Shown here one piece after another: positions 21,669 to 62,696 of a stretch of DNA of 64,000 nucleotides (positions are counted from its first letter, which is position 1; every line of letters starts with the position of its first letter). Under the pieces are notes generated by a model. That model saw only the letters and a list, made by a program, of their open reading frames with translations. It was not told the DNA's origin and did no database searches. The translations under genes and the position numbers were made by a program. Origin of the DNA: Leucoraja erinacea (taxonomy: Eukaryota); assembly GCF_028641065.1 (NCBI RefSeq), contig NW_026576777.1:1-64000 (forward strand), given 5' to 3'.

Positions 21669-21819
21669 NNNNNNNNNNNNNNNNNNNNNNNNNNNNNNNN
21701 NNNNNNNNNNNNNNNNNNNNNNNNNNNNNNNNNNNNNNNNNNNNNNNNNNNNNNNNNNNNNNNNNNNNNNNNNNNNNNNNNNNNNNNNNNNNNNNNNNNN
21801 NNNNNNNNNNNNNNNNNNN
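21669..21819. other. Assembly gap (151 N) next to AT/AC low-complexity repeat 21820-21935
   Basis: Run of n. Confidence 1.
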
Positions 21820-23687: not shown

Positions 23688-23725
<38 letters not shown>

Positions 23726-26700
23726 GAGAGAAGAGATGGGAGCGAGAGATCGAGAGGAGGGGAGAGAGAGATCGGGAGAAGAGAGGGAGAAGGGGGGAGA
23801 GGGAGAAGGGGAAAGGGGGGACAGGGAGAAGGGGGGAGGGAGAAGGGGGACAGGGACAAGGGGGAGAGGGAGAAGGGGGAGAGGGAGAGTGGAACGATAG
23901 CACATTATAACGCGCAGCCGTCCCATTCCGACCAAAGATTATAGAGCAGAGCTCCACTAGTATCTTTGATTGCGGCCGCCGCCACTGAAACCCCCGACCC
24001 ACCATTGCACCCAAAGATGAAAGAGCAGAGTTATATAATATTTGATTGCACCCTTCTTCACAGCGGGCTTGTGATCTTTGCTTGTGATGTCTTGTATGTA
24101 TGTGAGTGTTGTTTGCTATGTCCCTATGTTCGAGGAATATAATGGGTAACAGCCGCCCATTCTCGGACTTGAATCTGAGCTCGAAAAATCTCCTGGTCAC
24201 TGGCAAAGATCCTAGAGGAGCAAGATAGACCACTCCTCGAAAAACGCGTAGTATCACGTGTGTGATCGTCGACGCCATTTTTCGAGGCATTTATTGGGCT
24301 TCCCCCATAATGTCATGGCGTCCTTATCTAAATTCCATCTCACTGCTCTGCTATCAAGTATTCTAATCGTCAATCTAAACGACCCAACCTGTCATTCTTT
24401 AGGTTCCCCAATAAAAAAGAAAGGTGAGAAAATATTTTTATTATTTTCAGTCGATATTCTGTCGTAGAAATGTTATTTTCTGTTCTCCCATCAACGGCCA
24501 TTGTGAAACTGGGTTTGTCGGTACATTAGAAAGTTATTAGACTTATTTTTAATAGATCTTTACTCACCACAATAATAAAGACAATTTTAACACTTCTGTA
24601 CGTTTTTGGTTTTGTTTTGTAAGGGATTAGTCTCCACAATATGGCCCGCGGGACACATTAGGTCCAGTGACCAGGAGATTTTTCGAGCTCAGATACGTCC
24701 GAGAATGGGCGGCTGTTACCCATTATATTCCTCGAACGTAGGGACATAACAAACAACACTCACATACATACAAGACATCACAAGCAAAGATCACAAGCCC
24801 GCCGTGAAGAAGGGTGCAATCAAATATTATATAACTCTGCTCTATCATCTTTGGGTGCAATGGTGGGCCGGGGGGTTCGGTGGCGGCGGCCGCAATCAAA
24901 GATGCTAGTGGAGTTCTGCTCTATAATCTTTGGTCGGAATGGGACGGCTGCGCGTTATAATGTGCTATCGTTCCACTCTCCCTCTCCCGCTTCTCCCTGT
25001 CCCCCTTCTTCCTCCCCCCTTCTCCCTGTCCCCCCTTTCCCCCTTCTCCCTCCCCCTTCTCCCTCTCCCCCTTCTCCCTCTCCCCCTTCTCCCTGTCCCC
25101 CCCTTTCCCCTTCTCCCTCTCCCCTTCTCCCTCTCCCCCTTCTCCCCCCTTCTCCCTCCCTTCTCCCTCTCTCCTCTCGATCTCTCTTTCCCCTCCTCTC
25201 GATCTCTCGCTCCCCTCTCTTCTCTCGATCTCTCTCTCTCTCTCTCTCCCCCTCTCTTCGCGATCTCCCTCCCTTCCCTCTCTCCCTCCCTTCCATCTCT
25301 CCGTCCCTTACCTCTTCGTGAGAGTTGGCAGCTCTGCTATGCCTTGGGTCCAAAAGAGGATAGATAGAAAATACTTAATGGTCTTTGTAAGAAGATTTTA
25401 ATAAGCTCTTCTACATTTAAGGTAAATTGACATATTAGAGATAAAACGCATTTTCAATATACAGGTCTCTCCACACAACTGAAAACAATTGCATTTAAGT
25501 GATATATCATCCATTGTTCAGGCAAGTAGCACTAGGTTACAATAAACTTCCTACATATTCCAGGAATTCATCTCATAAAAATGGGAGGCTTAAATGCATT
25601 GTAAAATCATAAATCCATGTTGACTTGGACTAATCCTTTTACTGCTATCCAAATGCCCCATTATTACATCTTTAATAATTGACTCCAGCATCTTTCACAC
25701 CACCAAAATCAGGCTAACTGGTCTGTAATTCCCCGTTTTCTCTCTCGCTCCTTTCTTGAAAAGTGGGATAGCATTAGCTATCCTCCAATCCACAGGAACT
25801 GATCGTAAATCTATTGATCGTTGGAAAATAATAGAAACATAGAAATTAGGTGCAGGAGTAGGCCATTCGGCCCTTCGAGCCTGCACCGCCATTCAATATG
25901 ATCATGGCTGATCATCCAACTCAGTATCCCGTACCTGCCTTCTCTCCATACCCTCTGATCCCCTTAGCCACAAGGGCCACATCTAACTCCCTCTTAAACA
26001 TAGCCAATGAACTGGCCTCGACTACCCTCTGCGGCAGAGAGTTCCAGAGATTCACCACTCTCTGTGTGAAAAAGGTTCTTCTCATCTCAGTTTTAAAGGA
26101 TTTCCCCCTTATCCTTAAGCTGTGACCCCTTGTCCTGGACTTCCCCAACATCGGGAGCAATCTTCCTGCATCTAGTCTGTCCAACCCCTTAAGAATTTTG
26201 TAAGTTTCTATAAGATCCCCTCTCAATCTCCCAAATTCTAGAGAGTATAAACCAAGTGTATCCAGTCTTTCTTCATAAGACAGTCCTGACATCCCAGGAA
26301 TCAGTCTGGTGAACCTTCTCTGCACTCCCTCTATGGCAATAATGTCCTTCCTCAGATTTGGAGACCAAAACTGTACGCAATACTCCAGGTGTGGTCTCAC
26401 CAAGACCCTGTACAACTGCAGTAGAACCTCCCTGCTCCTATACTCAAATCCTTTTGCTATGAAAGCTAACATACCATTCGCTTTCTTCACTGCCTGCTGC
26501 ACCTGCATGCCTACTTTCAATGACTGGTGTACCATGACACCCAGGTCTCGCTGCATCTCCCCTTTTCCCAATTGGCCACCATTTAGATAATAGTCTGCTT
26601 TCCCGTTTTTGCCACCAAAATGGATAACCTCACATTTATCCACATTATACTGCATCTGCCAAACATTTGCCCACTCACCCAGCCTATCCAAGTCACCTTG

Positions 26701-26868
26701 CAGTCTCCTAGCATCCTCCTCACAGCTAACACGGCCCCCCAGCTTAGTGTCATCCGCAAACTTGGAGATGTTGCCTTCAATTCCCTTATCCAGATCATTA
26801 ATATATATTGTAAATAGCTGGGGTCCCAGCACTGAGCCTTGCGGTACCCCACTAGTCATTGACTGCCA
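22072..26868. repeat. Inverted segmental duplication: arms ~22072-24203 and ~24664-26868, spacer 24204-24663
   Basis: Non-CR1 sequence 23330-24203 is the reverse complement of 24664-25610, including the GA/CT low-complexity tract and the same CR1 junction. Confidence 0.92.
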
Positions 26869-31590: not shown

Positions 31591-31879
31591 TTAAAGAAAC
31601 GAGACTTACTGCATGTCCGTGTAAGTGCCGTAGAAGAGATGCGTGTCGGGCCGAATGAATGAAGGCACAAAGCGCTGGAGTAACTCAGCGCTCGGGCAGC
31701 AACTCTGGAGAATGTGGAGAGGTGATGTTTTGGGTTGGGTCCTATATTCATGTTCTCTGCAGATGCTGCCTGATCCGCTGAGTTACTCCAGCACTCTGTG
31801 CCTCTTTTCTTGTAAACCAGCATCTTCAGTTCCTCGTTTCCACAAATGTACGAAGAGTTGTTTCACTGAACTACCGTCC

Positions 31880-31990
31880 AATCTGCGGTCGATCTGACGC
31901 ACAGCAGCGCAGAAAAACTCGCAGCGGTTGTGAATTCTGCAGAATGACCAGCGGCTCCGTGTAATCCGTGTCTCGGCACTTCCTTCACCA
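31880..31990 (+). promoter_or_regulatory. Possible proximal promoter of the VJ-C1 gene (RUNX-like TGCGGT 31884-31889, ETS-like CACTTCCT 31977-31984)
   Basis: Short motifs typical of leukocyte promoters in unique sequence just upstream of the leader ATG; motifs this short occur by chance. Confidence 0.3.
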
Positions 31991-31992
31991 AA

Positions 31993-32041
31993 ATGTCATC
32001 GTTTACACAATTCATCTCCACACTCTGCCTCTTTCTCCCAG
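31993..32041 (+). CDS. Exon 1: leader/signal peptide MSSFTQFISTLCLFLP(G)
   Basis: ATG at 31993, hydrophobic stretch, strong donor CAG|GTAAGT at 32041/32042, 49 nt, phase 1, like Ig/TCR leader exons. Confidence 0.8.
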
Positions 32042-35000
32042 GTAAGTCATTCATGTTCACCCTTGCCAACCTGCTCACGTTGTCTTCCTATAACTTGTTT
32101 CTTTCTATGCCTTTTGCACTAAAGGTTGTTTTTTTGCCGTATTTTAGAAACTTCTTGTGTAATTTATGTTCAATTTGTTTTTTGAATATGTGTTTGTTTC
32201 AGTGTAAGTGCATGTGATGCTGTTGCAAGCAAGATTTTAATTTAGACACAAAAGCAGAAATTGGACATTTAGTTAAAATAAGAATAAAGGGGAGACCATT
32301 ACAGACTAAGGTGAGAAACAGCTTTTTCACCCAGAGAGTTGTGAATTTGTGGAATGGTTCCGAACCGAAACGTCACCCGTCATTTTTCACCAGAAATGCT
32401 GCCTGACCCGCTGAGTTACTCCTGTACCTTGTGCCTATCTTAAATATAAGCGACACAAGGAACTAACTGTAGATGCTGGAAATGCAGTTCTTGTAAGTTT
32501 ACATGAGGACATTAACGCAAATAAATGTAAGCGACACAAGGAAGTGCAGATGCTGGAATCTTGAACAAAACACAGTACTGGAGTAATTCAGCGGTTCAGG
32601 CAGCATCTCTGGAGAACATGGACAGATGATGTTTCGCGTCGCGACCTTTCTTCAGACATGTTCTCCAAAGATTCTGCCAGCGCCGCTGAGTTTCTCCAGC
32701 ACTTTGTGTCTGTCTTCGATATAGATCAACATCTGCAGTTCCTTCCTACACAAGTGGTTACAGGTGAGAGAGGGGGGGGGGGGGGGGGGTTAATTGGGCC
32801 TGGACCTCACTGTCCTTGTGCCCATGATAGTAAACTCGAGTTACTCGGAAGGCGTCGTTAACTATGTTCACTTTCCGTGCCAGGGTCCGCTGTCGGTGTG
32901 AGGGTGAACCAGTCTCCTGCTGCTCTGACACGTCTCCGAGGACAGACAGCTAAGTTCACCTGCTCCCTGCTACCTGGAGAGGGGGAGGTAGTTTCAATGA
33001 GGCAATACTGGTTTCGGACGAAAGACAACCCGGAGCTCTGGGACAACAAGACCGAGAGTTTTCTGAAGACAGGCGACCGACTGTTCGTGTCCGTGGGCTC
33101 GCTGGTCATTCGGGAGGTGACTGTGCACGATGCAGACACTTACCATTGTGTGGTACTGAATGAAGATATCTGGAAAAAGTTTACAGGAAACGGAACCACA
33201 TTACACATCCAAGGTAATTAATATAATAATAAACAGGAACAGGCCCTTCAGCCCACTATGTTCGTGCGGACCATGAGGCCAAGTTAAACAAATATGTGTC
33301 TATCCAAATGTCTCTTAAACTCTACGATCGTATCTGCCTCCACAGCCACCCCGACATCTGATGCGATGGAGTTGGTGAATCACACGAACCCCAAGTTCCC
33401 CACCCCGAAACGCCGCCTGTCCATTCTCTCCGCAGATGCGGCCTTAACCGCTGAGTTCCTCCAGCATTTTGTGTTTTGCTTAAGACTGCAGCGCCTGCAG
33501 TTCCATGTCTCTACTTCCATTTCATTCCTGCATTTCATCTCTCTCTATTAATGCTCATTTTCCGGCACAAACCATCCCAGTCTGACAAAAGGTCCCGAAC
33601 TTAAACGTCATATATCCATGATTTCCAGAGATGCTGCCTGACCCGCTGAGTTACTCCAGCGCTTTGAGTCTTTCTTTGGTAAAAATAAACCTCGCATCTA
33701 CAGTTCCTCCTGTCTCCCTAATGATACAAAATAGATAATGAAAACAACATCAACCTCGGTCGCAGTGTTTATATCCCCCAACAGTTCTAGTGTTGGCATT
33801 TAATTCTCCTGATTTCCTTACAAGGAGGGAGTGTGGAAACAAAAGCATCTTTGTTTCTCTCAGTTTTCTCTAGATTCCCTCTTGACCTGAATTCGTCAAG
33901 TTGGGAAAAGGGGAAGTACAACGTGATCTGGGGGGTCCTTGTACATCAGTCTATGAAAGTAAGCATGCGGGTACAGCAGGCAGTGAAGAAAGCGAATGGC
34001 ATGTTGGCCTTTATAACAAGAGGAATCGAATATAGGAGCAAAAGGGTATTTCTGCAGTTGTACAGAGCCCTACTGAGACCACATCTGGAGTATTGTATGC
34101 AGTTTTGGTCACCTAATTTGAGGAAGGATTGCTATTGAGGGAATGCAGCGTAGGTTTACAAGGTTAATTCCCGGGATGGCGGGACTGTCATATGCTGAGA
34201 GAATGGAGCAGCTGGGCTTGTACACTCTGGAATTTAGAAGAATGAGAGGGTATCTTATTGAAACATATAAGATTGTTAAGGGCTTGGACACGCTAAAGGC
34301 AGGAAACATGTTCCCGATGTTGGGGAGTCCAGAACCAGGGGCCACAGTGTAAGAATAAGGAGTAAGCCATTTAGAACGGAGACGCGGAAACACTTTTTTC
34401 TCACAGAGTGTGGTGAGTCTGTGGAATTCTCTGCCTCAGAGGGCTGTGGAGGCAGGTTCTCTGGAAGCTTTCAAGAGAGAGGTATGTAAAGCTCTTAAAA
34501 TTAACAGAGTCATGGGATATGGGGAGAAGGCAGGAACGGGGTACTGATTGGGGATGATCAGCCATGATCACATTGAATGGCAGTGCTGGCTCGAAGGGCC
34601 AAATGGCCTACTCCTGCACCTATTGTCTATTGTCTATTGATTCTTGTCTTTGTCAAGTTCGGTTTAATATTTGCTTCCGGGCTCCAGGGAAGTATAATAA
34701 TGCCCCTGAAATAATTCCCGGCTGCGATAACCAAATGTGCGGCAGATGCATCATGTATATGTGTGAAAATGAACACAACTAAATATAAGCGATAGAATCA
34801 AGGAGGGCAGCAGTGAGAGAGGGCAGACTCCAAGTGATGGAGTAACAGCGGGCCAGGCATCATCTCTGTATATCATGGATAGGTGACGTCTCAGTACGGG
34901 GCCCTACTACAAACTCCGAGAGAGGTTATTACAGAACTGCTGTCGGAGAGAAGAGGATAACTTCTTCAATGAACGCACACCTTGAGGAATTTCACAGTGG

Positions 35001-37740
35001 AGCAGTCAAATGTAGACACTGGTTTATACCACTCAACGGGTCAGGCAGCACCTCTGGAGATCACGGATAGGTGACGTTTAGGGTCAGGGCTCTTCGTCAG
35101 CCTGTGTTGGTTTGTGCCTCAACGTGCACATTAATAGAGAGAAATAAAATGCAGGAAGGGAAATAAATAGAAGTGGAGACGGGGAACTGCAGGCGCTGGA
35201 GTCTGAAGCAAAATACAAAGCAACGGGGAACTCGGCGGTTAAGGCAGCATTCGTGGAGGTTTGGTGTTGGGGAACTTGGGACGTGTGTGAGGTCCCCACC
35301 CCACCGTCTCAGCGGACAGTGGGGGTGTTCGCACACATCCCTAACGCTTCATTGAAGGGAGGCAGCTACAATGCAAACGTGCGGCCGCTCTCCCATCGCT
35401 CACGGGCTGGCGAGAGGGAGCCCGACCCGCTCAGACTCTGTTAAATAATTCTGGCAACGTGAATCCATCTTCTGACCAATCTGGGCCGGACAGTGCCAGA
35501 TGTAACACAAAATGCTGGAGCTACTCATCGGGTCGGTCCGTATCTGTGTGCGTGTGTGGGAGGAGGGGGGGGGGGGATAATTTACCGATTCACATTGAAG
35601 GCTTCCAGTCGAAACCCTGACCCTGAGACACAAGGAACTGGAGGGGTTGGTTAAAACAAAGACGCAAAGTGCTGGAGTAACTCATCGAGTCAGGCAGCAT
35701 CTCTGGAGAACATGGACCGTCATTCTCTTCCCACGAATCAGGCCTGTCCGGCTGAATATTTATATGTTCTGTTTTAGATGTCCATCATCGGCTTGGATTT
35801 AGTTTACCGTCTACATATTCAGTTCCATTTCATGCATTAAAACACACAAAGTGTTGGAGGAACTCGGCGGGTCCGGCAGCATCTGTGGAGGGAATGACAG
35901 GCGGCGATTCAGACCGAAGAATGGTCCCGACCCGAAACACCGCCTGTCCATTCCCCCCGCAGATTCACTGTGATCATGGCTGAGCATCCACAGTCAGTAT
36001 CCCGTTCCTACCTTCTCCCCATATCCATGGACTCCGCTATCTTTAAGAGCTCTATAACTCTCTCTTAAAAGCATCCAGATAATTGGCCTCCACCGCCTTC
36101 TGAGGCAGAGAATTCCACAGATTCACAACTCTCCGGATGAAAAGTTTTTCCTCATCTCCATTCTAAATGACCTACCTTAAAAATTCCAGCATCTCCAATT
36201 CCTTGTGTCTCCAATTGCATTTCATTCGCTTCCTGTATTTTTCTCTCTTATTGTGCATTTTGAGACACAGACTGAAGAGATGTAGTCTGTAGATGTAACC
36301 CGACCCGAAACATCACATATCATCCATGAAGAGTTACTCCAGCACTTTGTGTCTCGTCAGCTATCCATGTTCTCCACAGATGCCGCCTGACCCTCTGAGT
36401 TACTCCAGTACTTGTGCCTTTCTTTGGTATAAACCAGCGTTTGCAGCTCCTCTTATTCCGCTAATAATCCATTGAATAACTTGGTTGCTCCTTAAGCAGG
36501 TGCACGGCGTGCCGTGTCATCATAGTTGTTCCATGCATGACTGAGAGCGACAGGAAGATTCACAGCGTGTTATTTTCCTACTTTACGCAGCGAAGCCTGA
36601 CATCTCCCTGACCCTGGATCCCGGGGTAAAAGGCGCAAAGACGCGGAGCCTGACTTGTGTGGCCGCCGGATTCTTCCCGAGGGAGCTGAACATGTCCTGG
36701 GCTGTCGTGGGCCAGTTGTCCTATGAAACAGAAGCGGGGCCGCTGAGGGAGAATGAGGATGGAAGCTTCAACGTGAGCTCCCGGCTGCGGCTCACCTGCC
36801 CTCGGCTAGAGGCGGGCATGGTCGTCACCTGCCTGGTTCAGCACCTCACGGGGACGGGCTCGGTGAGCGAACATTTCCCTCCCATCCCAAGTAAGTGGCT
36901 TGAATGAACGTGGCAGCCAGCGTCCTCCAATTACTGAAGATACACAGAGTGCTGGAGTAACTCAGCGGCTCAGTTACTGCCGAGTTACTCCAACATGTTG
37001 TGTCTATCTGCGCTGTAAACTAGCATCTGCAGGTCCTTCCTACACATGTCCAAGGTTGCAAGGTTTAATAGTACATGTGTACACATTTGTTAAACGTAGC
37101 CACAATGAACTGCAGATTCTAGATTACAAAAAAGACACAAAGTGTTGAAGTAACTCAGTAGCGTCTAGTAGCATCTCTGGAGAACGTTGAACGCAATTCA
37201 TAAACCTGATCAAAAGTGTATAAGATCACTCAATGTGTACAATATCTATTGCAAATATGTATTTAGACTTTCAGACTTTAGAGATACGCGGAAAAAGGCA
37301 TTTCGGCCGATCAGCGATCACCTCATACCGCTAGACAAACACACGCTGGAGGAACTCAGCGGGTGAGGCAGCATCTATGTAGAGAAGGATATGCGACGTT
37401 TCGGGTCGAGACCTTTCTTCTTAAACACATCATACACTAACACTATCCTGCACATTGGGGACAATTTACAATTTTACCGAAGCCAATTAACCTACAAACT
37501 CGTACGTCTTTGGAGTGTGGGAGGAAACCGGAGCACCCGGAAAAAAACCCACGCACGTCACGGGAAGAACGTACAGACTCCGCACATCCAACACCCGGAG
37601 TCAGGATTGAACCCGCGTCTACTGCGCTGTAACAGCAACTCAAGTACAGTTCATCCGTGCATCGATATATATATATACATATTTGAGTTCCTGCCATATA
37701 TATTATATATATGTATGTTTATGCATCGATGATATCAGCT

Positions 37741-37798
<58 letters not shown>

Positions 37799-40700
37799 TC
37801 ATTATTATTTGAAACATTTACCATTACAATATGGCGTAAGTGCTTTATCATATCAATATATTAACCATATAACCATATAACAATTACAGCACGGAAACAG
37901 GCCATCTCGGCCCTACAAGTCCGTGCCGAAAAACTTTTAATCCTTAGTCCCACCTGCCTGCACTCATACCATAACCCTCCATTCCCTTCTCATCCATATG
38001 CCTATCCAATTTATTTTTAAATGATACCAACGAACCTGCCTCCACCACTTCCACTGGAGGCTCATTCCACACCGCTACCACTCTCTGAGTAAAGAAGTTC
38101 CCCCTCATGTTACCCCTAAACTTCTGTCCCTTAATTCTGAAGTCATGTCCGTTTGAATCTTCCCTATTCTCAAAGGGAAAAGCTGGTCCACATCAACTCT
38201 GTCTATCCCTCTCATCATTTTAAAATGATGACATTATTATATACATCTTGTACCCTGTATTTTAACGGTAAATGTCTCAAATAATAATGGAAGTTGAAGA
38301 AAGATGTATAAAATTGATACTCGAGAAACTGCAGATGCTGGAATCTTGAGCAACATACAAAGTGCTGGAGGAACTCAGCATCTGTGGAGGGAATGGACAT
38401 GCGTCATTTCGGGTCAGGACCCTTCAGCTCACAGATGCCGCCTGACCCACTGAGTTCCCCCAGCACTTTGTGTTTTGTTCAAGATTGCAGCGTCTGCGGT
38501 TCCTTGTGTCTGCAAATTTCATATTGTTTAATTAATTAAATTTATTCTGCGTTCATCGACACACAGATGGAATCTCGACAAAAAGGGTTTAAGTAAATAT
38601 ATAAACTATAAACATGCGCAGCGGGTCAAGCAGCATCTGTGGAGGGAATGAACAGACGACGTTTCAGACTGAACAAGGTTCCCGATCCAAACATCGTCTG
38701 TCCATTCCCTCCACAGATGCTGCCTGACCCGCTGAGTACCTCCAACACGTTGTGTTTTGCTCACGATTCCAGCATCTGCAGTTCCTTGTATCTCCATAAA
38801 CTATACACAATACTTAATTATTTCCACTGCAATTTCGCTCCTGGTGCCCCACCGGTTATAGTGTTGCTGTTAAATCAACTTGGTTTCCTTACAAGGACAG
38901 TGGAATATGGTGGAACGGTGGGAAAAGGGCACAAATTGCTGGAGTAACTCAGCGGGTCAGGCAGTATCTCTAGAGAACACGGATAGGTGATGTTTCGGGT
39001 CAGGACCCTTCTTCAGACTGAATATTATATTATGAAATATTGTAATGTATACGACTCCTATGAAGGCAGCGTTGTGATGTTGCTGAATTTTCTAATGATA
39101 CAAAGACAGATAGGAACGTTGATTGTGGATAGAATATATGAACAAGAAAATAGATGTGAAGTCTAGCATAATGTGGGGGGGGGGAAAGCAACATTGTATA
39201 TTTTGATGAGAAAACAAAAGCTTTTTGCTGTATCTTAGTCTACGTAACAATAAACTAAACTAAATCTTGTTCTTCATGGACTTGTGGGCTGAAGGACCTG
39301 TTCCTGTATTGTTATATGTTCTTCTTTAGAGTAGTTTTCTTGTTTTCATTGGTCTATATTTGGTATAAACCAGCATTTCTTTCCTACATTCTCTATCTAT
39401 CTATCTGTCTGAAAAAGGGATGCGACCCTTTAAACATTGGATAGGCATATGGATGAGAAGGGAATGGAGGGTAATGGTATGAGTGCAGGCAGGTGGGACT
39501 AAGGGGAAAAAAAGTTGTTCGGCACGGACTTGTAGGGCCGAGATGGCCTGTTTCCGTGCTGTAATTGTTATATGGTTATATGGTTATATGGACCCGAAAG
39601 TCACCTACAGTATTTCTTTTCTTTAGAGATGCTGACTGAACAGCTGAGTTACTACAGCACTTTGTGTCTATCATCTGATTTTTATTTACTTTTGAAATTA
39701 TTACCACTTTTCCCCCAGGAATATCACCCTGGAAAACATTCCCCTGCAACCACAAGAGATGCAACACCTGTCCCAACTCCCTCGACTCCGTCCCGGGATC
39801 CCCGTAGTCCTTTCAGGTTAGGCAGAGGTTCACTTGCATCTCCTCCAACCTCACCTACTGTATCCGTTGTTCAATATGTGGACTCTTATATATCGGCAAG
39901 ACCAAATGTAGACTGGGCAACCATTTCGCTGAACACCTTCTCTCAGTCCGCCTGGCCCTACCTGATCTCCCAGTTGCTAAACACATTTAATTCTCCTTCT
40001 CATTCCCGCTCTAACCTTTCTGTTCTAGGCCTCCTCCATTGTCAAAGTGAGGTTAAATGGAAATTGGAGGAATGGCCCTATTTATTCTCAGCGATGGAAA
40101 CATTTCAACTGGGTGAGATGTTTTGCACATGGGTTAAGCTTTTATACACTAACCCAACAGCTAGCATGATGACAAATCAAATGTTATCAACAAAATTATA
40201 TTTATCTAAAGGTTTCAGACAAGGATGCCCGTTATCTCCATTATTATTCACCCTTGCTATTGAACCACTAGCAGAAAGTGTTCGAGTACATCCAGTAATA
40301 TATGGGTATAATACTAAAAACACAGTTAATAAAATCTCTCTATATGCAGACGATGTATTACTATATATTACAAACCCAGAAATCAGCATTCCAAACTTGT
40401 TAAATCTTGTAACTAAATTTGGTTTATTTTCGGGATATAGAATTAATTGGAATAAAAGTGAGATTATGCCAAGTTATACATATTGCAACAATCACCTTTC
40501 AGAATAGTCAGGGAAAAATGTAAATACCTAGGAATTTATGTAACCATGAAATATACTTCTTTATTTAAATCAAATTTCATGCCTTTACTTAATAAATTGC
40601 ATAAGAATATTCAATATTGGAAAACACTTCTCATTTCAATGCTCGGTAGATATAAAATGATTTTCTTCTACAATTGCTATAACCTTTTACAATCAATTCC

Positions 40701-43700
40701 TATAAATCTCCCAAAATATTTATTTTAAAAAGTTGACTCTATAGTGCCAAGTTTTATTTGGAATTATAAGAACGATTGAATAAGCAAAAAACACTTATGC
40801 AAATCCAAGACCAAAGGAGGATTGGTTTTACCAATTTTTTAATTTTACTTTTGGGCAGTCAATGTCAAAAATATGAATTTTTGGTTGGAAGATATGGATC
40901 AACAACCAGACTGGTTAAAGATGGAAAAGGAAGACTGTTTGCCTTTTGAAATTGGTCCGATTCTGTTAGCTCCCACAAAATTGAATTAAAAAATCTATAG
41001 TGAAAACCCTATAATATATAGTGGTATTCGACTTTGGAAACAACCAAAAAAGGCATTAAAATTGGATAATTTATCATTTTCTCTCCCCATTGCAAATAAC
41101 TCTTCATTTAAACCCTCAGTGTTGGATAAAGGTTTTGTACAATGGAAAAATCATGGAATTAAAAAATGGGACATCTTTATAGAAATTGTATTTTTCTCTC
41201 GTTTGAGGAGTTACAACAGAATTACGGATTACATTCAAATAATTTTTTTAGATATTTACAACTTAAGATTATGTTAAATCACATACACGAGAATACAGAA
41301 CCAGAGAACCAGAGATTCTAGATGAATGTTTGAATAAACACCCTAACACAGTCAAATTAATATCTCACATTTATAATACTTTTATAGACAGTGAGAATCC
41401 GTCCACGGAATTATACAGAGCAGCATGGGAAAAGGAATTAGCTCAACCTATAACGAAATATATTTGGGACGAAAGCCTACAACATATACACCAATGTTCG
41501 TTAAAAACCAGACATTCTTTAATACAATTTAAAGTACTAAATAGACTGCATTATTCTAAGACAAAATTAAATAGAATGTTTCCTAATATCTCTCCTATCT
41601 GTGATAAATGTCAATCACACATGGCTAATTCAACCCATACTTTTGTAAACTGTAGTAAAATTAAAAATTACTGGATGGATATTTTCAAAATAATCTCTGT
41701 AGTCGTCAATATCTAAATGGATCCCAATCCTAAATTAATAATATTGGGCATATCAGAACAATACCTAAAACTCACAATAAACCAAATAAATTTCCTTGAT
41801 TACAGTATAATAATTGGGAAAAAATTGATATTAAAATTTTGGAAAACCCAACAACCCCCACAATCAAGATGTGGATTATGGAGATGTCGGAGACCTTACA
41901 TTTGGAAACAATTAGATTTCTTAATTGACAAACCAGAATTATTTACTAGAATATAGTCTCCATTTATAGATTTATGAAGGGGTAGATCGGACTAGTGTGA
42001 AGGCTGGACTGAAGCCTGAACCCAGGACTAGATGAATAGTTATGTTCTCTGGCCCCAAGTTGTATTATTGACAGTTTATCCTATTTTTCTAATTTCCTTC
42101 TTTCTTTCTTTCTTTTTCCTATCTATAAATATAAATAAATAATTAGGGGCAATGTTAACATGTAAACGATAAAGGAGGATCCCAGCTACATTGGTAACTG
42201 GCTCCCTGGAAACCTGGATAGTTAATATGTAACCGTTAAACAAAGTCTGTACTGGTTTGGATTATGATATGCAGATGCCTCTAATAAAAATCTATTAAAA
42301 AAAAAAGGAAATTGGAGGAACAACATCTCATATTTCGCTTGGGTAGTTTACAACCCAGGGGTATGAATATTGATTTGTCTAACTTCAAGTAACCCTTGAA
42401 TTCCCTCTCTCTCTCCATCCCTCCCCATCCAAGTCACAAGTTTTTTGTTCTCACCTAGCTACAGCTAACAATGACCTGTTTCCTTTATCATCAATACTTT
42501 TTTGCATATCTTTCATTTAGTTGTTCTATATCTCTCGACATCATTGTCGATATCTCTTGTTTCCCTTCCCCTTGACTTTCAGTCTGCAGAAGTCTTGACT
42601 CAAAACGTCACCCATTCCTTCTCTCCAGAGATGCTGCCTGTCCCACTGAGTTACTTCAGCATTTTGTGTCTATCTTCGATTTAAACCAGCATCTGTCGTT
42701 CCTTCCAATGAAATTCTGCTCCTCTGTCATCTAATTTGCTCCCTGTTCTCACGATCGGTCCTTGACCTGTTTCTTTAACTTTGTTTCTCTTTACACATTT
42801 TTAGATTAGATTAGATTAGGTCCTTTATTTGTCATTCAGACCTTTCGGTCTGAACGAAATGTCGTTGCCTGCAGCCATACATGTAATAATAAACAACAAA
42901 ACACCGGGCGATGGTAGTCAGTCCCGCGGCTCACCGAGCTCCGTCAACGGGACGGTTCACGCTTCGCGGCCCGGGGTGGTCGAAGCTGCCACACTCCAGT
43001 CCAGCGGACGCAGCTGTTGCCGCGGGAGCTCCGGAAAACAGGCACCAGCCTGTGACCTGCGAGCTCCCGACGATGTCGTCCACTGGCCCGCGGCCGAGCC
43101 CCCGGATTCAGGTCGCCGCCGCCAGAACGCCGCCTCAGCTACTGGAGCACCGTCCCAGCCCCAAGCCGCGCCGCCCCCACGGGAGCGCCGTCCCAGCCTC
43201 GAGTCGTGCCGCTGCCACTGCGCCGGGCTGCCTCAGCCCCGTGCCGGGCCGCCTCAGCCACCGGATAGCCTTCCTGGCCCTGAGCCGGGCCACCCTCACG
43301 GGAGTGCCGTCCCACCGGAACATCGAGTCGTGCCGCTGCCACCGGAGCATCTCAGCCCCGCGCCGGGCCGCCCTCACGGGAGCGTCGAGTCACTGGAGCG
43401 CCCTAACGCCGCCACAGCTTGAAGACGGCCAGCCTAGTGTTGGTGAGTCCTGGCTGGCTCTACCTCCGGAGCCTCGAGGTCGGTCGCAGGTTGGAGGCCG
43501 CCAGCTCCGCCATTAGGCCTCAGCGCAGATGGAGGCAGAGGAGGGGGATATGACAAGAAAAAGTCGCATTCCCTGAAGGGAGAGACAGAAAGCCCTGTTT
43601 CAGCCGCCCTCCCCCACACACATAACACAACCTAATAAATTTAACCAAACAAGACAAAAAAACCAACACAAAAAAGTATAAACAGACGGACTGCAGGAGA

Positions 43701-46700
43701 GCCGTTCAACAGCGCCGCCACTTCCGGAGCCTGACCTGCTGCATATTTACAGCATTTTCTTTCTTTTCTTTAATTAAAAAAAAACTTCTTGTTGTAGATT
43801 GGTTACTTTACTTACTAACCAATGTAGTGCTTTATTATTATATGGCAGGAGACAGCGTTTATCCTCTGTGACCTGGGAGATCTTGGTTTCATAGTAAATG
43901 ATTTACCGAAGCCAGTAAGCAGATATAGCAAATCAACGTGAAAGCTGTATAGTGGAAATGTCAAGGACTAGAGGACATAGCTTCAAGGTGAGAGAAGCAA
44001 AGTTTAAAGGAGATGTACGGGACAAGCTGTTTTAAGCAGAGGGTGGTGAGTGCCTGGAACATGCTGCCAGTAGTGGTGGTGGAGGCTGATATGGTAGTGG
44101 CATTTAAGAGGTGTTTAGATAGGCATATGGATGTGCAGGGAATGGAGGGATATGATTCACGTGCAGGCAGAGAAGATTGGTTTAACTTGGCTCCATGTTT
44201 GTCACAGACATTGCAAACTGAAGGGCCTGTACTATGTTCTAAACTCTATGAGGTTGGCAGATTCTGTACACAACACATTCCAAGACAGACCATTACATAA
44301 AGGATTCACTGTTGATTTTGCATAATGATTTTTCCTTATTCTTTGGTTTATAAGGGGCAAAGTTTAACAAAGATGTGCAGGGTGAGTTCTTATACACAGG
44401 GTGGTGGGTTCCTGGAACACGCTGCCAGGGGTGGTAGTGGAGGAAGATATGATAGTGGTGTTTAAGAGGCTTTTAGGAAGCAGTTACGCAGCTGATTTTC
44501 CAATAAACCTGGGATGTCCTGGGATGTCAGGACTTTCATATGAAGAAAGACTGGATAGACTCGGCTTGTACTCGCTAGAATTTAGGAGATTGAGGGGGAA
44601 TCTTATAGAAACTTACAAAATTCTTAAGGGATTGGACAGGCTAGATGCAGGAAGATTGTTCCCGATATTGGGGAAGTCCAGGACAATGGGTCACAGCTTA
44701 AGGATAAGGGGAACACCTTTAGGACCGAGATGACAAAAACATTTTTCACGCAGAGTGGTGAATCTCTGAAACTCTCTGCCACAGAAGGTAGTTGAGGCCA
44801 GTTCATTTGCTATATTTAAGAGAGAGTTAGATGTGGCCCTTGTGGCTAAAGGGATCAGGGGATATGGAGAGAAGGCAGGTACAGGATACTGAGTTGGATG
44901 ATCAGCCATGATCATATTGAATGGCGGTGCAGGCTCGAAGGGCCAAATGACCTACTCCTGCACCTATTTTCTACGTTTCTATGTTTCTATGTAAACCCTA
45001 GTGGTTTGTGAAATGTTTCACTTCTCACTAAACAGCTCGGTAATTTACAACACCTATTGAGTCCACACCCAAGATTAGAAGTTGTTCAGCCACAGCCATA
45101 CAATGATGTCTGTCTTGCGCTTGTTGTGCTTCTTGTGCGTGATGGTGGGAGATTGGTGGAAACAGGGCCGCGACGTGAACGCTCTTTCCTTGACCCCATT
45201 TACAACACGTTATATTGCGGTCATTTACAACACAAGGATCCAATCTTTACCCCAGTAACAGTAAACTTAGTGAATAGTAAGAATGTTAATCTATGAATAG
45301 AATAATGTTGGTTTTCTCCTCTGAAAGGCCTGGCTCATTTCTTTAAGTATAGATATTTGTAGAAATAGAATATTAAGTGATAATCAAGGAGTATCTATAG
45401 TAACATTGACTTCTCTAACTTCAAGTAGCCCTTGCTTTCCCTCTCTCTCCATCTCCTCCCTCTTCCCAGTTCTCCTACCAGTCTTACTGTCTCTGACTAC
45501 ATTTTATCTCTGTACTGCCCACTTCCCTGACATCAGTCTGAAGAAGAGTCCCAACCAGAAAAGTCACCCATTCCTTCTCTCTAGAGATGCTGTCTGTTCC
45601 GCTGAGTTACTCCAGCAGTTTGTGTTTGCCTTCGATTTAAACCAACATCTGCAGTTCTTTCCTACACATATCTATATTAACAGACATATTGGTAATATTT
45701 ACCATGGAATTCCTGCAGAAAAAAATCCCATTGACATATTTCACAAGAGCAATATATCGGAAATATTAGATTTTAATATATTTCTGTTTCAATTGTCTGT
45801 GCGGAGATTGCATGTTTTAGCTGTGACCGCGTGGGTTTCCTCCGGGTGCTCTGGTTTTCTCGCATGTCCAAAAGACATAAAGGTTTGTAGTTCAATTGGT
45901 CCCTGCACATTGCCTCTAGTGAGTAGAGAGTGGATGTGAAAGGGTGATAACATACAACTGGTGTAAACGGATGATCGATAGTCAGCGTGGACTCTGCGGG
46001 TTGAAGCACCAGGTTCTATCTGTGTTTCTAAACAAAATTAAACTAAACGACATACATGATTAATGTTTCATGTAACAGTGCATTTAAATTATTTAATGTA
46101 ATGTAACATGCAATAGTCATGATTATATTTGCTATTCATTGTAGCATTATTTTGATTCATATTTCAATTGTGATTTTCAAGGATCCTCCAAGTATTATTT
46201 CATTCGACTGAGTCTGATCCTAATAGTACCAATATGGGTCTGGTTTGTGTATCATTATCACAGTAAATTGAAGAAAGGAAAAGGTAATGTATATATTGTA
46301 CATTTTATTTTGTAATTTAACTAAAAACTGAGTATATAAAAGTGAATATTGTCTTTAGTTCCCAGAGAGATTAAAATAATTTAAACAAAATGAGGGTGAC
46401 AGCTTGTAGAGCTGCTGCCTCACAGCGCTAGAGATCCAGGTTAGAAACATAGAAACATAGACAATAGGTGCAGGAGTGGGTCATTCAGCCCTTCGAGCCT
46501 GCACCGCCATTCAATATGATCATGGCTGATCATCCAACTCAGTATCCCGTACCTGCCCTCTCTCCATACCCCCTAATCCCCCCAGCCACAAGGGCCACAT
46601 CTAACTCCCTCTTAAATATAGCCAATGAACTGGCCTCAACTACCCTCTGTGGCAGAGAGTTCCAGAGATTCACCACTCTCTGTGTGAAAACAGCTTCGAA

Positions 46701-47150
46701 CCAGCACCACCATTCAATGTGATCATCTAAAATCAGTACACCGTTCTTGCTTTTTCACCATATCCCTTGATTCCTTTAGCCCTAAGAAATAAATCTAACT
46801 CTCTCTTGAATCCTGACTACGGGTGCTGACTTTGTGTAGAGTTTGCATGTTCTCCCTGTGACCACTTGGATTTCCTCAGAGTGCTTTGTTTTTCTCCCAC
46901 ATCCCAAAGATGTGTGGGTTTGTAGGTTAATTGACCCTGTGTAAATTGCCCCTAGTGCGCAGGGAGTGGATGTGAAAATGGGATAATGTAGAACTAGTCC
47001 GAACAGGTGATCGATGGTCGGCGTAGACGCGGTGGGCTGAATGGCCTGTTTCTGTCCTGTATTTCTGAAATACACTAAATATTCATGATATTTTTTATAG
47101 AATCATCTCTCCATGACACAACTGTTGATATTCAAAGCATGAGAAACTGA
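31993..47150 (+). CDS. Non-rearranging VJ-C1 Ig-superfamily type I membrane receptor (NKp30/SIRP/antigen-receptor-like), predicted join 31993-32041, 32884-33213, 36591-36890, 46182-46283, 47101-47150; 276 aa
   Basis: All five exons have GT/AG sites and phase-1 junctions typical of IgSF genes. Lengths 49+330+300+102+50=831 nt keep one frame. Domain order is signal peptide, V(J), C1, TM, short tail. Confidence 0.8.
32884..33213 (+). CDS. Exon 2: V-set Ig domain with built-in J-like G strand
   Basis: Acceptor ctttccgtgccAG, donor CAAG|GTAATT. Protein VNQSP..RGQTAKFTC..QYWFR..SLVIREVTVHDADTYHC..FTGNGTTLHIQ has the B-strand Cys, C-strand Trp, D-x-x-x-Y-x-C and G-x-G-T-x-L motifs. Confidence 0.93.
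33898..34640 (+). mobile_element. CR1 3' fragment in the V-C1 intron
   Basis: KKANGMLAFI, RPHLEYC, QRRFTRLIPG; tail tattgtc repeats. Confidence 0.9.
36591..36890 (+). CDS. Exon 3: C1-set Ig constant domain
   Basis: Acceptor ttttcctactttacgcAG, donor A|GTAAGT, 300 nt. AKPDISL..SLTCVAAGFFPRELNMSW..ENEDGSFNVSSRL..VTCLVQH matches the C1 signatures C-x-A-x-G-F-x-P, W, N-x-D-G-S-F and C-x-V-x-H. Confidence 0.92.
37744..37796. repeat. (AT)n microsatellite
   Basis: Direct reading. Confidence 0.95.
37863..38226 (-). mobile_element. CR1 family A 3' fragment
   Basis: Reverse complement of the family A 3' end with an (aaccatat)n tail. Confidence 0.9.
39726..42710 (+). mobile_element. Penelope-like element (GIY-YIG region and pLTR) split by an L1 insertion
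   Basis: An alternative frame reads CNHKRCNTC..FQVRQRFTCISSNLTYCIRCSICGLLYIGKT..RLG; resumes at 42321 with QHLIFRLGSLQPRGMNID. Confidence 0.8.
40073..42306 (+). mobile_element. 5'-truncated L1-clade LINE
   Basis: GFRQGCPLSPLLF, SLYADD, SGYRINWNKS, C-terminal CDKC..HTFVNC; AATAAA and A-tail; 14-bp TSD ggaaattggaggaa at 40059-40072 and 42307-42320. Confidence 0.92.
42800..43730 (-). mobile_element. GC-rich non-autonomous LINE-derived element with a (ctaat)n tail
   Basis: (ttaga)n end; 3' hairpin related to the 20140-20200 family; internal tandem GC-rich units. Confidence 0.55.
44515..44992 (+). mobile_element. CR1 family B 3' fragment (older CR1-like tails at ~43950-44480)
   Basis: PGMSGLSYEERL..; (tttctatg)n tail. 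Confidence 0.9.
46182..46283 (+). CDS. Exon 4: transmembrane exon RSSKYYFIRLSLILIVPIWVWFVYHYHSKLKKGK
   Basis: Acceptor tgattttcaAG, donor AAG|GTAATG, 102 nt, phase 1/1. About 19 hydrophobic residues containing one Arg, followed by the basic stop-transfer KLKKGK. Lies in non-repetitive AT-rich DNA. Confidence 0.75.
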
Positions 47151-47168
47151 AATACCTCAGTAAATGAG
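47101..47168 (+). CDS. Exon 5: cytoplasmic exon ESSLHDTTVDIQSMRN-stop (TGA 47148-47150), followed by 18 untranslated nt
   Basis: Acceptor attttttatAG at 47099-47100, consensus donor GAG|GTGAGT at 47168/47169. Confidence 0.65.
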
Positions 47169-52471: not shown

Positions 52472-52590
52472 GATAATGTTTCAATAAACTATGAAAATCT
52501 GCATTAGGCGCCTGTTTATTGCAAGGACAGGAATTGAGATGGACCGAGCAATCCCAAGAAACAGAATATGCCGTCTTAAAGGTCAAAGAT
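52472..52590 (+). pseudogene. Exon 6: now untranslated, decayed ITIM/ITSM-like cytoplasmic tail (DNVSINYENL..ETEYAVLKVKD)
   Basis: Acceptor tttttgtgttgcAG at 52470-52471. The phase-0 frame gives INYENL, and a second frame gives TEYAVL. Adding one T at 52504-52505 joins the two frames. Confidence 0.65.
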
Positions 52591-53900
52591 AACAATTCTC
52601 TCTTTTTTGCATCTTTCTTCTTTTTCTTCATTCTTTTCGTTTTTTTCTTTTCCTCGATTTATGTATCAATTTATTCTTTTCGATTTATGTATCAATTTAT
52701 AAGATGTTAAAAATGAAGCTGTACGGAAATTGTATAACTCTCATGCTGATTGCTTTATTCTTGTACAATAGCTCCTAATAAAATAAACATATTAAAAAAA
52801 AGATTAAAATAATTTATGAAGAACCGGTAACTTACTCCACAGTAATACATTGTCCCTCTTCAACATAACCGCAAACTGATACTTATCATACAACCACACA
52901 CTCATCTCTCAAACAACATATGCAGAATATAAAAAAAACAGAATCTAGCGGATGTGGCATGGCTGTCGAAACTTACTTCTCTATTCAATTACTTTCCTTG
53001 AGCTCAAAACCAATTGATCTTTGTGACTCGCCATAAATCGCCTTCTGAGAGTTCCAAATGTACTTAGAATAAAGGGGAGGCATTTAGATTGAGGTGAGAA
53101 AAAACGTTTTCACCCAGAGAGTTGTGAATTTGTGGAATTCCCTGCCACAGAGGGCAGTGGAGGCCAAGTCACTGGATGGATTTAAGAGAGAGTTAGATAG
53201 AGCTCTAGGGGCTAGTGGAATCAAGGGATATGGGGAGAAGGCAGGCACGGGTTATTGATTGAGGATGATCAGCCATGATCACAATAGTTGGCGGTGCTGG
53301 CTCGAAGGGCCGAATGGCCTCCTCCTGCACCTATTTTGAAAAGCTTTGTTTTGCATGCTATCCAATCAAATCAGATACTACTATACATAAATACAATTAA
53401 CCCAAACTCAAGTACAATAGGTGGAGCAAAGTAGAAGATACAAAGTGCAGAATTTAATTCTCAGCACTGTAGCACACCGGTTCCACAGACAAAGTCCAAT
53501 GTCCACAATGGGGTAGAGGTGAATCGGAAGCCTGATAACAGAGGGGAAGAAGCTGTTGCTGAATCTGTTTGTGCGCACTTTCAAGCTTCTGTACCTTCTG
53601 CCTGATGAGAGCAGGGAGAAAAATGAATGATCAGGTTGGGACAAGTCTTTGATTATGTTGGCTGCCAATCCGATGAGCCCCACACCTCTACTTTCAGAAG
53701 GTTCCGACCCAAAACGTCACCTATTTTTTCTCTAGAGATGCTGCCTGACCCGTTGAGCACTTTGTCTCTATCTAGAGCTGGGTTACACTGAAGATCATCA
53801 GTGCCCTAAAACATGACCCGTCCATGTCCTCCAGAGATGCCACTTGACTCTTCCTCAGTCTGAATGGGTCTTCTGTCCTGGCAGATGTTTTCACGAGGTT

Positions 53901-54572
53901 TAACCATATAACCATATAACCATATAACAATTACAGCACGGAAACAGGCCATCTCGACCCTTCTAGTCCGTGCCGAACACATAATCTCCCCTAGTCCCAT
54001 ATACCTGCGCTCAGACCATAACCCTCCATTCCCTTCCCATCCATATAACTATCCAATTTATTTTTAAATGATAAAAAACGAACCTGCCTCCACCACCTTC
54101 ACTGGAAGCTCATTCCACACAGCTACCACTCTCTGAGTAAAGAAGTTCCCCCTCATGTTACCCCTAAACTTCAGTCCCTTAATTCTCATGTCATGTCCCC
54201 TTGTTTGAATCTTCCCTACTCTCAGTGGGAAAAGCTTTTCCACATCAACTCTGTCTATCCCTCTCATCATTTTAAAAACCTCTATCAAGTCCCCCCTTAA
54301 CCTTCTGCGCTCCAAAGAATAAAGCCCTAACTTGTTCAACCTTTCTCTGTAACTTAGTTGCTGAAACCCAGGCAACATTCTAGTAAATCTCCTCTGTACC
54401 CTCTCTATTTTGTTGACATCCTTCCTATAATTAGGCGACCAAAATTGTACACCATACTCCAGAATTGGCCTCACCAATGCCTTGTTCAATTTTAACATTA
54501 CATCCCAACTTCTATACTCAATGCTCTGATTTATAAAGGCCAGCACACCAAAAGCTTTCTTTACCACCCTAT
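53901..54572 (-). mobile_element. CR1 family A 3' fragment; adjacent CR1 pieces at 53065-53337(+) and 54943-55270(-)
   Basis: DRVVKKAFG..RPILEYGVQFW..; (aaccatat)n tail. Confidence 0.9.
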
Positions 54573-56411
54573 CGCGTTCCTGTTTAGATTTAGCTCCAAG
54601 GGCTAACGGAATCAAAGGATATTGATAGAGAGCAGGAACGCGGTACTGATTTTGGACGATCAGCCATGATAATATTGGATGGCGCTGCTGACTCGAAGGA
54701 CCAAATGACCTATTCCTGCACCTATTTTCCATGTCTCTATGACCTGAAACATTGCCTGTCCTCATACTCCAGAGACGCTGACTGACTTGCTGAGTTACTC
54801 CAAGTTGATTAGTCCGACTGATTTTGGTAAGTCTGAATAAGGGTCTCGATCCGTTATCTAATCTGAAGAAGGGTCTCGATCCGTACGGTGCCTGTCCAGC
54901 TGAGTTCCTCCAGCACATTGTGTTGTGTTCCAGGTTCAATCATAGAAACATAGAAACATAGAAAATAGGTGCAGGAGTAGGCCATTCGGCCCTTCGAGCC
55001 TGCACCGCCATTCAATATGATCATGGCTGATCATAGAAACATAGAAACATAGAAATTAGGTGCAGGAGTAGGCCTTTCGGCCCTTCGAGCCTGCACCGCC
55101 ATTCAATATGATCATGGCTGATCATCCAGCTCAGTATCCTGTACCTGCCTTCTCTCCATACCCCCTGATCCCTTTAGCTACAAGGGTCACATCTAACCCT
55201 CTTAAATATAGCCAATGAAATGGCCTCAACTACCTTCTGTGGCAGAGAATTCCAGAGATTCACCACTCTTACCACCACAAGGGCCATTGTCTTGCAGAGC
55301 ACAGTTGCTTGTGTCATCCAAATTAACATCCATCTTTCTTGTTTTAATGGAGTTTTCCTGTCAGAGTGGTTGATGCAGGGAATTAGATTGTGGGGATAAT
55401 TTTCGCTTTTACCTGACTCCGGAGAAAACTGGAGCAATAGATCGTGGAATCTCACACGGCAATACTTTGTTCTGTTTACCACTGTATCTCTAGTTGGTCA
55501 CATCTGAGGTCAGATCAATTCCAGACCACTGCTTCAAAACATGCGCAAGCCATTACAATAAATTACGCAGAAGCAAACATGGTGATATTTACTCATATTT
55601 TGCAATCACTCTCTGCTCCCACCACATCCTGCCCATGAACATCTCCACCCAGTTTAGTTCACTTTAGTTTAGATTATTGTCCCGTGTACCGAGGTACAGT
55701 TAAAAGCATTTGTTGTTGTGTGCTAACCAGTCAGTGGAATGACAATACATGATTCCAATCAAGCCTCCACAGGGTAAAGGGAATAATGTTTAGTGCAAGA
55801 TTTGGGTGGCACGGTGGCACAGCTGGAGAGTTGCTGCCGTGCCAGAGACATGGATTTGATCCTGACTATGGGTGCTGTCTGTTTCCCGAAGGGCCTGTTT
55901 CCACGGTGTATCTCCAAACTAAACTAAATTAAAGTCCAGTAAAGTCTGACGGTGTGCAATGAGGTAGATCAGGACTGCTCCCTAGTTGGTGATAGGATGG
56001 TTCAGTTGCCTGATAACAGCTGCGAAGAAAGTGTCACTGAATCTGGAGGCTTGCGTTTACAAGCTGCTGTACCTCTTGCCTGACGGAGGAGGGTTGAATC
56101 CACTTTAAATGCAATTTTCATGGATCCTTACCTGATGTCAAGCAATCTTGTTGTGTATTTGGAGTATTGTTTTGTTTAAAGAGTAAGTCATAAAATGCTT
56201 GAGTAACAGCGGGTCAGGAAGCGACTGTAGAAGGAACGGACATGTGATGTTTCGGGTCGGGACCCTTCTTCAGACTGATTGTTGTAGGAGTGGGGGAGGA
56301 AACTAGAAAAGAGAGGTGGTAGTAGGACAAAGTGATAGGTGGATACAGGGGATGGGGGGGATTGATCAGCAGATTGGTTGAATAAAAGACCGATAAAGAA
56401 TAAAAGGCTGA

Positions 56412-62543: not shown

Positions 62544-62696
62544 CAATGTGTCATCAATGCATCGATCCACATTCCTCATTGTGTTTTGAACAAGTATTAA
62601 TGACACCGCGTTCCTTTGAATAAAATTCACGCGGCATCATTAATACTTGTTCAAAACACAATGAGGAATGTGGATCGATGCATTGATGACACATTG
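62544..62696. repeat. Perfect 60-bp inverted repeat (hairpin) inside a hAT-like MITE that starts at ~62282
   Basis: 62544-62603 is the exact reverse complement of 62637-62696. Confidence 0.95.

Follow-up and report, generated by a model that had tools for sequence, protein, structure and literature searches.

The stretch of DNA analysed in this study, referred to as the window, comprises 64,000 nucleotides (nt) of the skate Leucoraja erinacea (NCBI RefSeq assembly GCF_028641065.1, contig NW_026576777.1, positions 1 to 64,000 of the forward strand), and it holds a receptor gene whose exons begin at position 31993. This locus is a real, non-rearranging gene structure that encodes a leader, a V domain with its J-like strand in the same exon (VJ), a C1-set domain and a transmembrane (TM) segment, and it is distinct from immunoglobulin (Ig) and T-cell receptor (TCR) genes. 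Sequence comparison places it very probably in a family of V-C1 receptors of elasmobranchs. The best explanation of the locus, held with somewhat more confidence than doubt, is that it is a skate member of this family in which an inhibitory receptor may have been converted to a short-tailed, possibly adaptor-coupled form.

Structure of the gene and its domains

Five exons join in frame in the order leader, V, C1, TM and tail. This had been proposed in an earlier reading made from the sequence alone (the sequence-only reading), and canonical splice sites and the translations of the exons bear it out:

Exon 1, 31993..32041, + strand: start codon, signal peptide MSSFTQFISTLCLFLP and 1 nt, split-leader type, donor GTAAGT
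Exon 2, 32884..33213, + strand: end of the leader, complete V-set domain and J-like G strand (FTGNGTTLHIQ)
Exon 3, 36591..36890, + strand: single C1-set Ig domain (99 residues), then the short stalk EHFPPIP
Exon 4, 46182..46283, + strand: end of the stalk, TM helix YYFIRLSLILIVPIWVWFVYHY, basic stop-transfer sequence SKLKKGK
Exon 5, 47101..47168, + strand: first cytoplasmic exon, ESSLHDTTVDIQSMRN, a stop codon and NTSVNE, donor GTGAGT at 47169

All introns as far as exon 5 are in phase 1 and have GT-AG borders; the donors of exons 1 to 4 are GTAAGT, GTAATT, GTAAGT and GTAATG, and each acceptor is an AG preceded by a pyrimidine run. The four codons formed at the junctions specify Gly, Ala, Arg and Glu, and the aligned relatives have the same residues at those places. 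Exon 1 aligns with the leaders of the family (MSS...L.FCLG in the Narcine protein P0004). The translated TM segment of exon 4 is SSKYYFIRLSLILIVPIWVWFVYHYHSKLKKGK, and exon 5 translates as SSLHDTTVDIQSMRN followed by the stop, which is the part that the sequence-only reading had called the tail. That reading ended the exon at 47150, and its continuation to 47168 is an extension of the earlier model.

Every search and fold was run on single exons. The V domain is 109 residues long with its Cys, Trp and DxxTYxC motif all intact, and it ends in the J-like strand, whose presence inside the V exon had been noticed from the sequence and which proved to be conserved across the family. The calls of V-set and C1-set domains were likewise upheld by Pfam, with V-set at E 2.4e-8 for exon 2 (above the gathering score) and C1-set at E 4.8e-13 for exon 3, as compared with 1.9e-4 for C2-set_2, the CD80-like C2 set. 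An AlphaFold2 model of the C1 exon (pLDDT 83) had only C1-set domains as Foldseek neighbours, namely the C domain of B7-H6, MHC II, TCR C-beta, beta2m and Fc (TM-scores of 0.7-0.79). The corresponding model of the V exon (pLDDT 73) was nearest to shark VNAR, CD79b, TCR V-alpha, Ig kappa and NKp30. Exon 3 has an extra unpaired Cys (RLRLTCPRLE) where the relatives have Asp.

Recombination signal sequences (RSSs) had been reported absent beside the V exon, and a scan of both strands from 31 to 48 kb agreed, with 0 sites as compared with a mean of 0.24 in shuffled sequence. The scan required a CAC-anchored heptamer with at most 1 mismatch, a spacer of 12 or 23 nt (+/-1) and a nonamer with at most 2 mismatches, and no exact heptamer was found near the V exon. 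A second C1 exon or paralogues of the gene were not found within the 64-kb window.

Two further features of the gene region were observed. If the C1 donor is left unspliced, the frame continues through 36891-36908 for six codons (SKWLE after Pro) to a TGA, and an unspliced message of this kind would encode a secreted V-C1 protein; the TM exon is also skipped in some shark isoforms (P0062, P0063). Upstream of the start codon, positions 31876-31992 read in frame as ..TSFTK-MSS and resemble the N-terminal extension ..SSFTN-MSS of Narcine P0004. This likeness suggests that the Narcine model probably reads through a conserved 5' untranslated region.

A family of V-C1 receptors in sharks and rays

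When the V exon was compared with 1.84 billion representative proteins, four collinear proteins stood far above the rest (E 5e-35 to 2e-16), the first being P0001 from Pristis (E 4.8e-35, 67% identity) and the others P0002, P0003 and P0004. Each exon of the window matches 12-23 family members. Identities to Pristis are 67% for V (P0001/P0054), 62% for C1 and 52% for TM, and across the family they range over 47-67% for V, 47-62% for C1 and 42-57% for TM (the last from the TM exons of 12 relatives, by tblastn and blastp). Collinear V-C1-TM proteins have been predicted for 13 named species of sharks and rays:

Ray members: Pristis, two Mobula species, Hypanus, Hemitrygon, Narcine
Shark members: Scyliorhinus, Stegostoma, Hemiscyllium, Heterodontus, Heptranchias, Mustelus, Cetorhinus
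Further member: P0051, an entry without a species label
Example members: XP_051870356/57 (Pristis pectinata), XP_038658211 (Scyliorhinus canicula), XP_059824346/47 (Hypanus sabinus)

The names given to these proteins by NCBI conflict with one another and include SIRP-beta-1-like, SHPS-1-like (tyrosine-protein phosphatase non-receptor type substrate 1-like), Ig kappa light chain-like, TCR beta chain-like, Ig heavy chain-like and uncharacterized. The family plan that emerges consists of a split leader, a single-exon VJ-type V domain, one C1-set domain, a TM segment and a tail of ~110 residues. The skate copy shares with the elasmobranch SIRP-like proteins the collinear order of leader, VJ, C1, TM and cytoplasmic exons, the J-like strand, the N-glycosylation sites N[IM]SW and N[LV]SS, and the junction residues.

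In full-length members the tail carries four tyrosine motifs, LHYAxV, TEYAxL, xxYSxV and TxYASL. These are of the immunoreceptor tyrosine-based inhibitory motif (ITIM) and switch motif (ITSM) type, and SIRP-alpha bears a similar set of four. The frog protein P0040 is collinear with a shark protein over V, C1, TM and tail motifs at 28% identity. The suggestion that the skate gene is a member of a non-rearranging receptor family of innate type holds, with relatives that carry ITIM/ITSM tails.

Not all members are of the long-tailed kind. Pristis P0055, Mobula hypostoma P0066 and Hemitrygon P0067 have near-identical V-C1 parts followed by a TM exon of another kind, which contains an Arg (IPFILRAVII...), and by a short tail; this indicates that the family makes activating-type partners. 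These three proteins look like activating partners made by exon exchange, unlike the point mutation in the TM segment of the skate copy. The occurrence of apparently inhibitory and activating forms side by side is, as read from these predicted proteins, the pattern of paired receptors. Mobula birostris P0058 and Hypanus sabinus P0002/P0056 carry a tandem duplicate of the C1 domain and are V-C1-C1; since the two C1 copies are nearly identical, this SIRP-like three-domain form arose recently within rays.

The protein database searches, one of them made with only the V exon, returned no skate protein among the relatives of the gene, and the skate copy is therefore probably unannotated, as the sequence-only reading had supposed. 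The same reading had regarded the gene as hidden, in the sense of new or special, and this did not hold, because its collinear homologues are already predicted and mostly labelled SIRP-like. No paper on SIRP-like genes of cartilaginous fish was found in the literature searched. The family is so far known from automatic annotation only, and the skate copy is an additional, probably unannotated member of it.

Loss of the tail and changes in the TM segment

The skate copy differs from the elasmobranch SIRP-like proteins in where it ends. The reading frame of exon 5 meets a TGA at 47148-47150, 18 nt short of the donor GTGAGT. The translation of this exon, ESSLHDTTVDIQSMRN-stop-NTSVNE, aligns by tblastn with DSSIHDKNVDGQIMGTLVNASVNE of the shark Heptranchias protein P0059, and the TGA is therefore a nonsense change in a conserved exon. 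The remainder of the tail was located further downstream, using tblastn with eight relatives together with three-frame reading:

Decayed exon 6, 52472..52916, + strand: fossil ITIM/ITSM tail
Insert splitting exon 6, 52609..52790, no strand assigned: 182 nt, T-rich (47% T), flanks weakly duplicated

Exon 6 has its acceptor AG at 52470-71 and begins as DNVSINYENLH-stop-APV, in which a TAG (52505-07) replaces the codon of the first ITIM tyrosine. After a frameshift the homology continues in the second frame as QETEYAVLKVKDNN (TEYAVL at 52561-78), and it resumes in the third frame as IYEEPVTYSTV..SST, a TAA (52866-68) and ..TTTHSSLKQ, with the Tyr of the last motif changed to His. The terminal stop codon of the family has been lost. 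A clean target-site duplication around the 182-nt insert was considered and rejected, since the flanks match weakly.

The TM segment also departs from the family, with an Arg codon (CGA, 46205-46207) in place of the family's Leu. The aligned skate exon 4 also lacks the Cys that relatives have in the TM helix and their juxtamembrane Cys-Cys pair. The tyrosine motifs that mark the family are still recognisable in the skate copy, but they lie behind the TGA and in a decayed exon. By these comparisons the skate copy is a truncated derivative of the long-tailed family form. It has the features expected of an activating partner: an ectodomain homologous to inhibitory members, no encoded ITIM and a basic TM residue.

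A similar course is known from mammals, where activating KIR and Ly49 receptors arose repeatedly from inhibitory homologues (PMC2213150). Many activating receptors assemble, through a basic TM residue, with dimers of adaptors that carry immunoreceptor tyrosine-based activation motifs (ITAMs) (PMC1440944). The skate copy parallels activating KIR and Ly49 in the route taken, with the ectodomain kept, the ITIM tail stopped off and a basic TM residue gained, but it belongs to an unrelated receptor family, in a cartilaginous fish, and is known here from sequence alone.

A mechanism can be proposed along these lines. The V domain would bind a ligand, an ability that the skate copy may have retained. 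In the long-tailed relatives the phosphorylated tail would recruit SH2 phosphatases, and loss of the tail would turn such an inhibitory receptor into a short-tailed one. The TM Arg could then couple the skate receptor to a dimer of acidic ITAM adaptors of the FcR-gamma, DAP12 or CD3-zeta type, or alternatively the product could act as a non-signalling decoy.

Functional receptor or pseudogene

Whether the skate copy still makes a receptor was judged from the distribution of lesions along the gene. Exon 6 carries at least five disabling lesions in ~255 homologous nt, whereas the 831 nt from ATG to TGA contain 0 frameshifts or stops. The chance of zero lesions in 831 nt at an equal density is ~8e-8 (6e-5 with a count of only three lesions), in a calculation that assumes uniform rates. 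The difference between the lesion-free 831 nt and the decayed exon 6 suggests that the ectodomain and TM segment were constrained after the tail was lost, and it argues that selection kept them. Under the 50-nt rule for nonsense-mediated decay, the spliced message should escape degradation because only 18 nt separate the stop from the last junction.

Several observations weigh against a short-tailed receptor in use. The sequence-only reading had called for spliced reads joining these exons, but none turned up in the RNA sampled: a polyA raw-read run covered the leader, V and C1 exons to a depth of ~zero and showed no splice joints. This run and three contig runs were compared with 31700-37600 at 90% likeness, and repeats accounted for the signal. 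The polyA run was sampled to ~6%, comes from an unknown tissue and carries a species label other than that of the best DNA source. From the contig runs there were only repeat matches and an unspliced 161-nt piece (X1) over the C1 acceptor; because this contig crosses the acceptor unspliced, the run that it comes from is probably DNA. The RNA null is too shallow to count against expression. In addition, 12 of the 64 family-conserved V and C1 positions deviate in the skate copy (19%), which equals the most divergent relative, Narcine, as compared with 0-12% in the others, a possible sign of relaxed constraint. Divergence is greatest in the TM and juxtamembrane region, and the pairing with an adaptor is purely an inference. 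The missing skate database protein would also fit a gene that annotation pipelines treated as broken.

A less probable, though still serious, alternative is that the locus is a young pseudogene which became useless after tail loss and is unexpressed, and whose V, C1 and TM exons are open only through lack of time. The sampled RNA run without reads on the exons is in keeping with this, as are the deviations at conserved positions (among them Tyr>Gln, Gly>Lys and the unpaired C1 Cys), the disappearance of the cysteines that relatives conserve in and beside the TM helix, the two stops that arose independently in the tail exons, and the lack of a skate family protein among the database matches. 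However, at the lesion density of exon 6 a decaying gene would be expected to have ~10-16 frameshifts or stops in the upstream 831 nt, the splice sites and structural core residues are all intact, and the RNA test was shallow and of unknown tissue. Of the two, a functional short-tailed receptor is the likelier, at about even odds or slightly better.

Relationship to SIRP

SIRP-alpha/beta/gamma (PDB 2wng, 4i2x) have, like the family described here, a single-exon VJ-type V domain, C1-set domains, a TM segment and a four-tyrosine tail of ITIM type. SIRP receptors likewise come in inhibitory and activating pairs, and in the activating ones the TM segment has a basic residue. This raises the question of whether the family is the true cartilaginous-fish orthologue of SIRPA/SIRPB, with the skate gene as a SIRP-beta-like member. 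Most members are named SIRP-beta-1-like or SHPS-1-like by NCBI, and the two groups have in common a single-exon VJ followed by C1 with the junction motif GT.L.[VI][QR]AKP, the motif GF.PRD..[IL].W and four YxxL/V/I tail motifs. The family profile aligns human SIRP-alpha over V and d2 in one stretch (109 bits). The only outsider in the profile search was the turtle SIRP-alpha P0089 (E 7.5e-24), which is a true SIRP-alpha (E 2.9e-83 to PDB entry 2wng), and two rays have the V-C1-C1 arrangement.

Other comparisons make orthology rather unlikely, if far from negligible. The turtle SIRP-alpha and the shark protein share only 23% identity, and the family profile scores against the PDB at 121 bits for Ig lambda and 114 for UrIg2, as compared with 109 for SIRP-alpha. 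The C1 exon gives 29.5 bits to d3 of SIRP-alpha, 30.6 to CH3 of IgG and 27.9 to C3 of UrIg2. Ig kappa, VNAR, contactins and NKp30 make up the 60 best PDB matches of the V exon, with no SIRP V domain among them. The family is built on a single C1 domain and not two: the skate gene shares the single-exon VJ-type V domain of SIRP, but in place of V-C1-C1 there is one C1 exon in the window, and most relatives likewise have one. In sequence, SIRP, Ig light chains and UrIg2 appear to be roughly equidistant from the family. On these comparisons it resembles SIRP in plan and tail, but membership in SIRP is not established.

Relationship to antigen receptors and their precursors

The sequence-only reading had likened the layout of the gene to that proposed for the pre-RAG ancestor of antigen receptors, and one alternative is that it is a surviving relative of the VJ-C1 precursor, closer to Ig and TCR than to any innate receptor, in the manner of UrIg and UrIg2. 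The layout of VJ, C1 and TM with a split leader suits this proposal, and the V exon comes closest, in both sequence and fold, to Ig kappa, VNAR and TCR V. In the ESM Atlas the closest cluster bears the name 'putative antigen receptor' (score 0.95, to be taken as a lead only), UrIg2 is the best summed PDB match of the C1 exon, and UrIg-type genes show that such relics exist in elasmobranchs (PMC12227049). On the other side, the similarities are weak (20-30% identity, 20-30 bits per domain) and no better than those to SIRP or IgG CH3, and ITIM/ITSM tails with activating partners are the hallmark of paired innate receptors. A surviving precursor relative is therefore quite unlikely. The V-C1 layout that had prompted the idea is present, but the long forms carry SIRP-alpha-like tails and a remnant of the ancestor is undemonstrated.

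UrIg and UrIg2 (PDB 9dmx) resemble the skate gene in being elasmobranch genes with a non-rearranging single-exon VJ, a split leader and C1-type domains. UrIg is secreted and carries three C domains, UrIg2 carries 9-11, and neither has an ITIM tail (PMC12227049). The per-domain similarity of the skate gene to UrIg2 is 19-28 bits, which is no higher than that to IgG CH3. Membership in UrIg/UrIg2 was rejected, with one C1 domain instead of at least three and no excess similarity.

It was also considered whether the locus is a germline-joined gene, that is, an Ig light-chain or TCR gene in which V and J have been fused in the germline. The sequence-only reading had named this as an outcome that would overturn it. 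Germline-joined V and J are common in elasmobranch Ig clusters, some relatives are automatically labelled Ig-kappa-like, TCR-beta-like or Ig-heavy-like, and the V and J parts of the skate gene are contiguous. Nevertheless, this is highly improbable. The best V match in the PDB, which contains shark and skate VNAR and many Ig and TCR structures, has only E 4e-6 and ~25% identity, and human C-lambda gives only 10 bits against the C1 exon. The VJ fusion, TM exon and ITIM tail are common to sharks, rays and the frog relative, and the scan of 31-48 kb found no RSS. The gene is too distant from Ig and TCR, and a conserved TM segment with an ITIM tail is foreign to both, so this candidate was set aside.

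Two single-V receptors were considered as well. NKp30 (NCR3) resembles the skate copy in its non-rearranging V domain with a GNGT J-like motif, its TM Arg and its short tail, and it signals via ITAM adaptors. It differs from the skate gene in having no C1 domain, and the similarity of the V domains is weak (19.9 bits, Foldseek rank 29). PRARP (Fu et al. 2019) reportedly has a single V domain and no C1, and identity with it was set aside for that reason.

A last reading is that the family is not SIRP and forms an independent ancient VJ-C1 lineage beside Ig, TCR and UrIg, present in sharks, rays, probably chimaeras, and amphibians. This is considered unlikely. If it were true, the family would be a membrane-bound, ITIM-signalling cousin of the antigen-receptor precursor, and the skate copy would show a flip from inhibitory to adaptor-coupled signalling.

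Genomic surroundings

The window contains 133 open reading frames (ORFs) of at least 90 amino acids, and Pfam assigns to them only domains of transposable elements apart from one V-set and one C1-set. The introns and flanks are thus rich in transposons; the sequence-only reading had described the exons as spread over 15 kb of them. The gene stands alone among long interspersed nuclear elements (LINEs) and a Tc1-type element, with no neighbouring host gene in the 64-kb window from which linkage could be read.

The flanks at 1-31000 and 53000-64000 contain 11 ORFs with RVT_1, endonuclease and GDSL/OSK-type ORF1 domains and no host gene. A helix-turn-helix domain of a Sleeping-Beauty-type transposase lies at ~19.2-20.7 kb. 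A palindrome at 22072-26867 consists of two arms (22072-24168 and 24697-26867) that are 92-99% complementary and each hold a LINE reverse-transcriptase ORF. It starts ~250 nt past an assembly gap (21669-21819) and is either a real inverted duplication or a fold-back artefact of assembly. Two GC-rich stretches (19600-20230 and 42820-43520) have several open frames on both strands with Ala/Pro/Arg-rich translations, and these are probably low-complexity or CpG-rich repeats in transposon debris.

Significance

Genes with a single-exon VJ and a C1 domain are sought as clues to the origin of antibodies and T-cell receptors. The skate gene is a member of a widespread paired-receptor family of the SIRP-alpha type and not a lone relic of the antigen-receptor line. 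As this family extends across sharks and rays, has a relative in a frog and carries contradictory labels, it merits a proper name and tree. Among the oldest jawed vertebrates, the skate copy itself clearly illustrates how an inhibitory receptor can lose its tail and acquire a charged residue in its TM segment, a route that is well known from mammalian KIR and Ly49.

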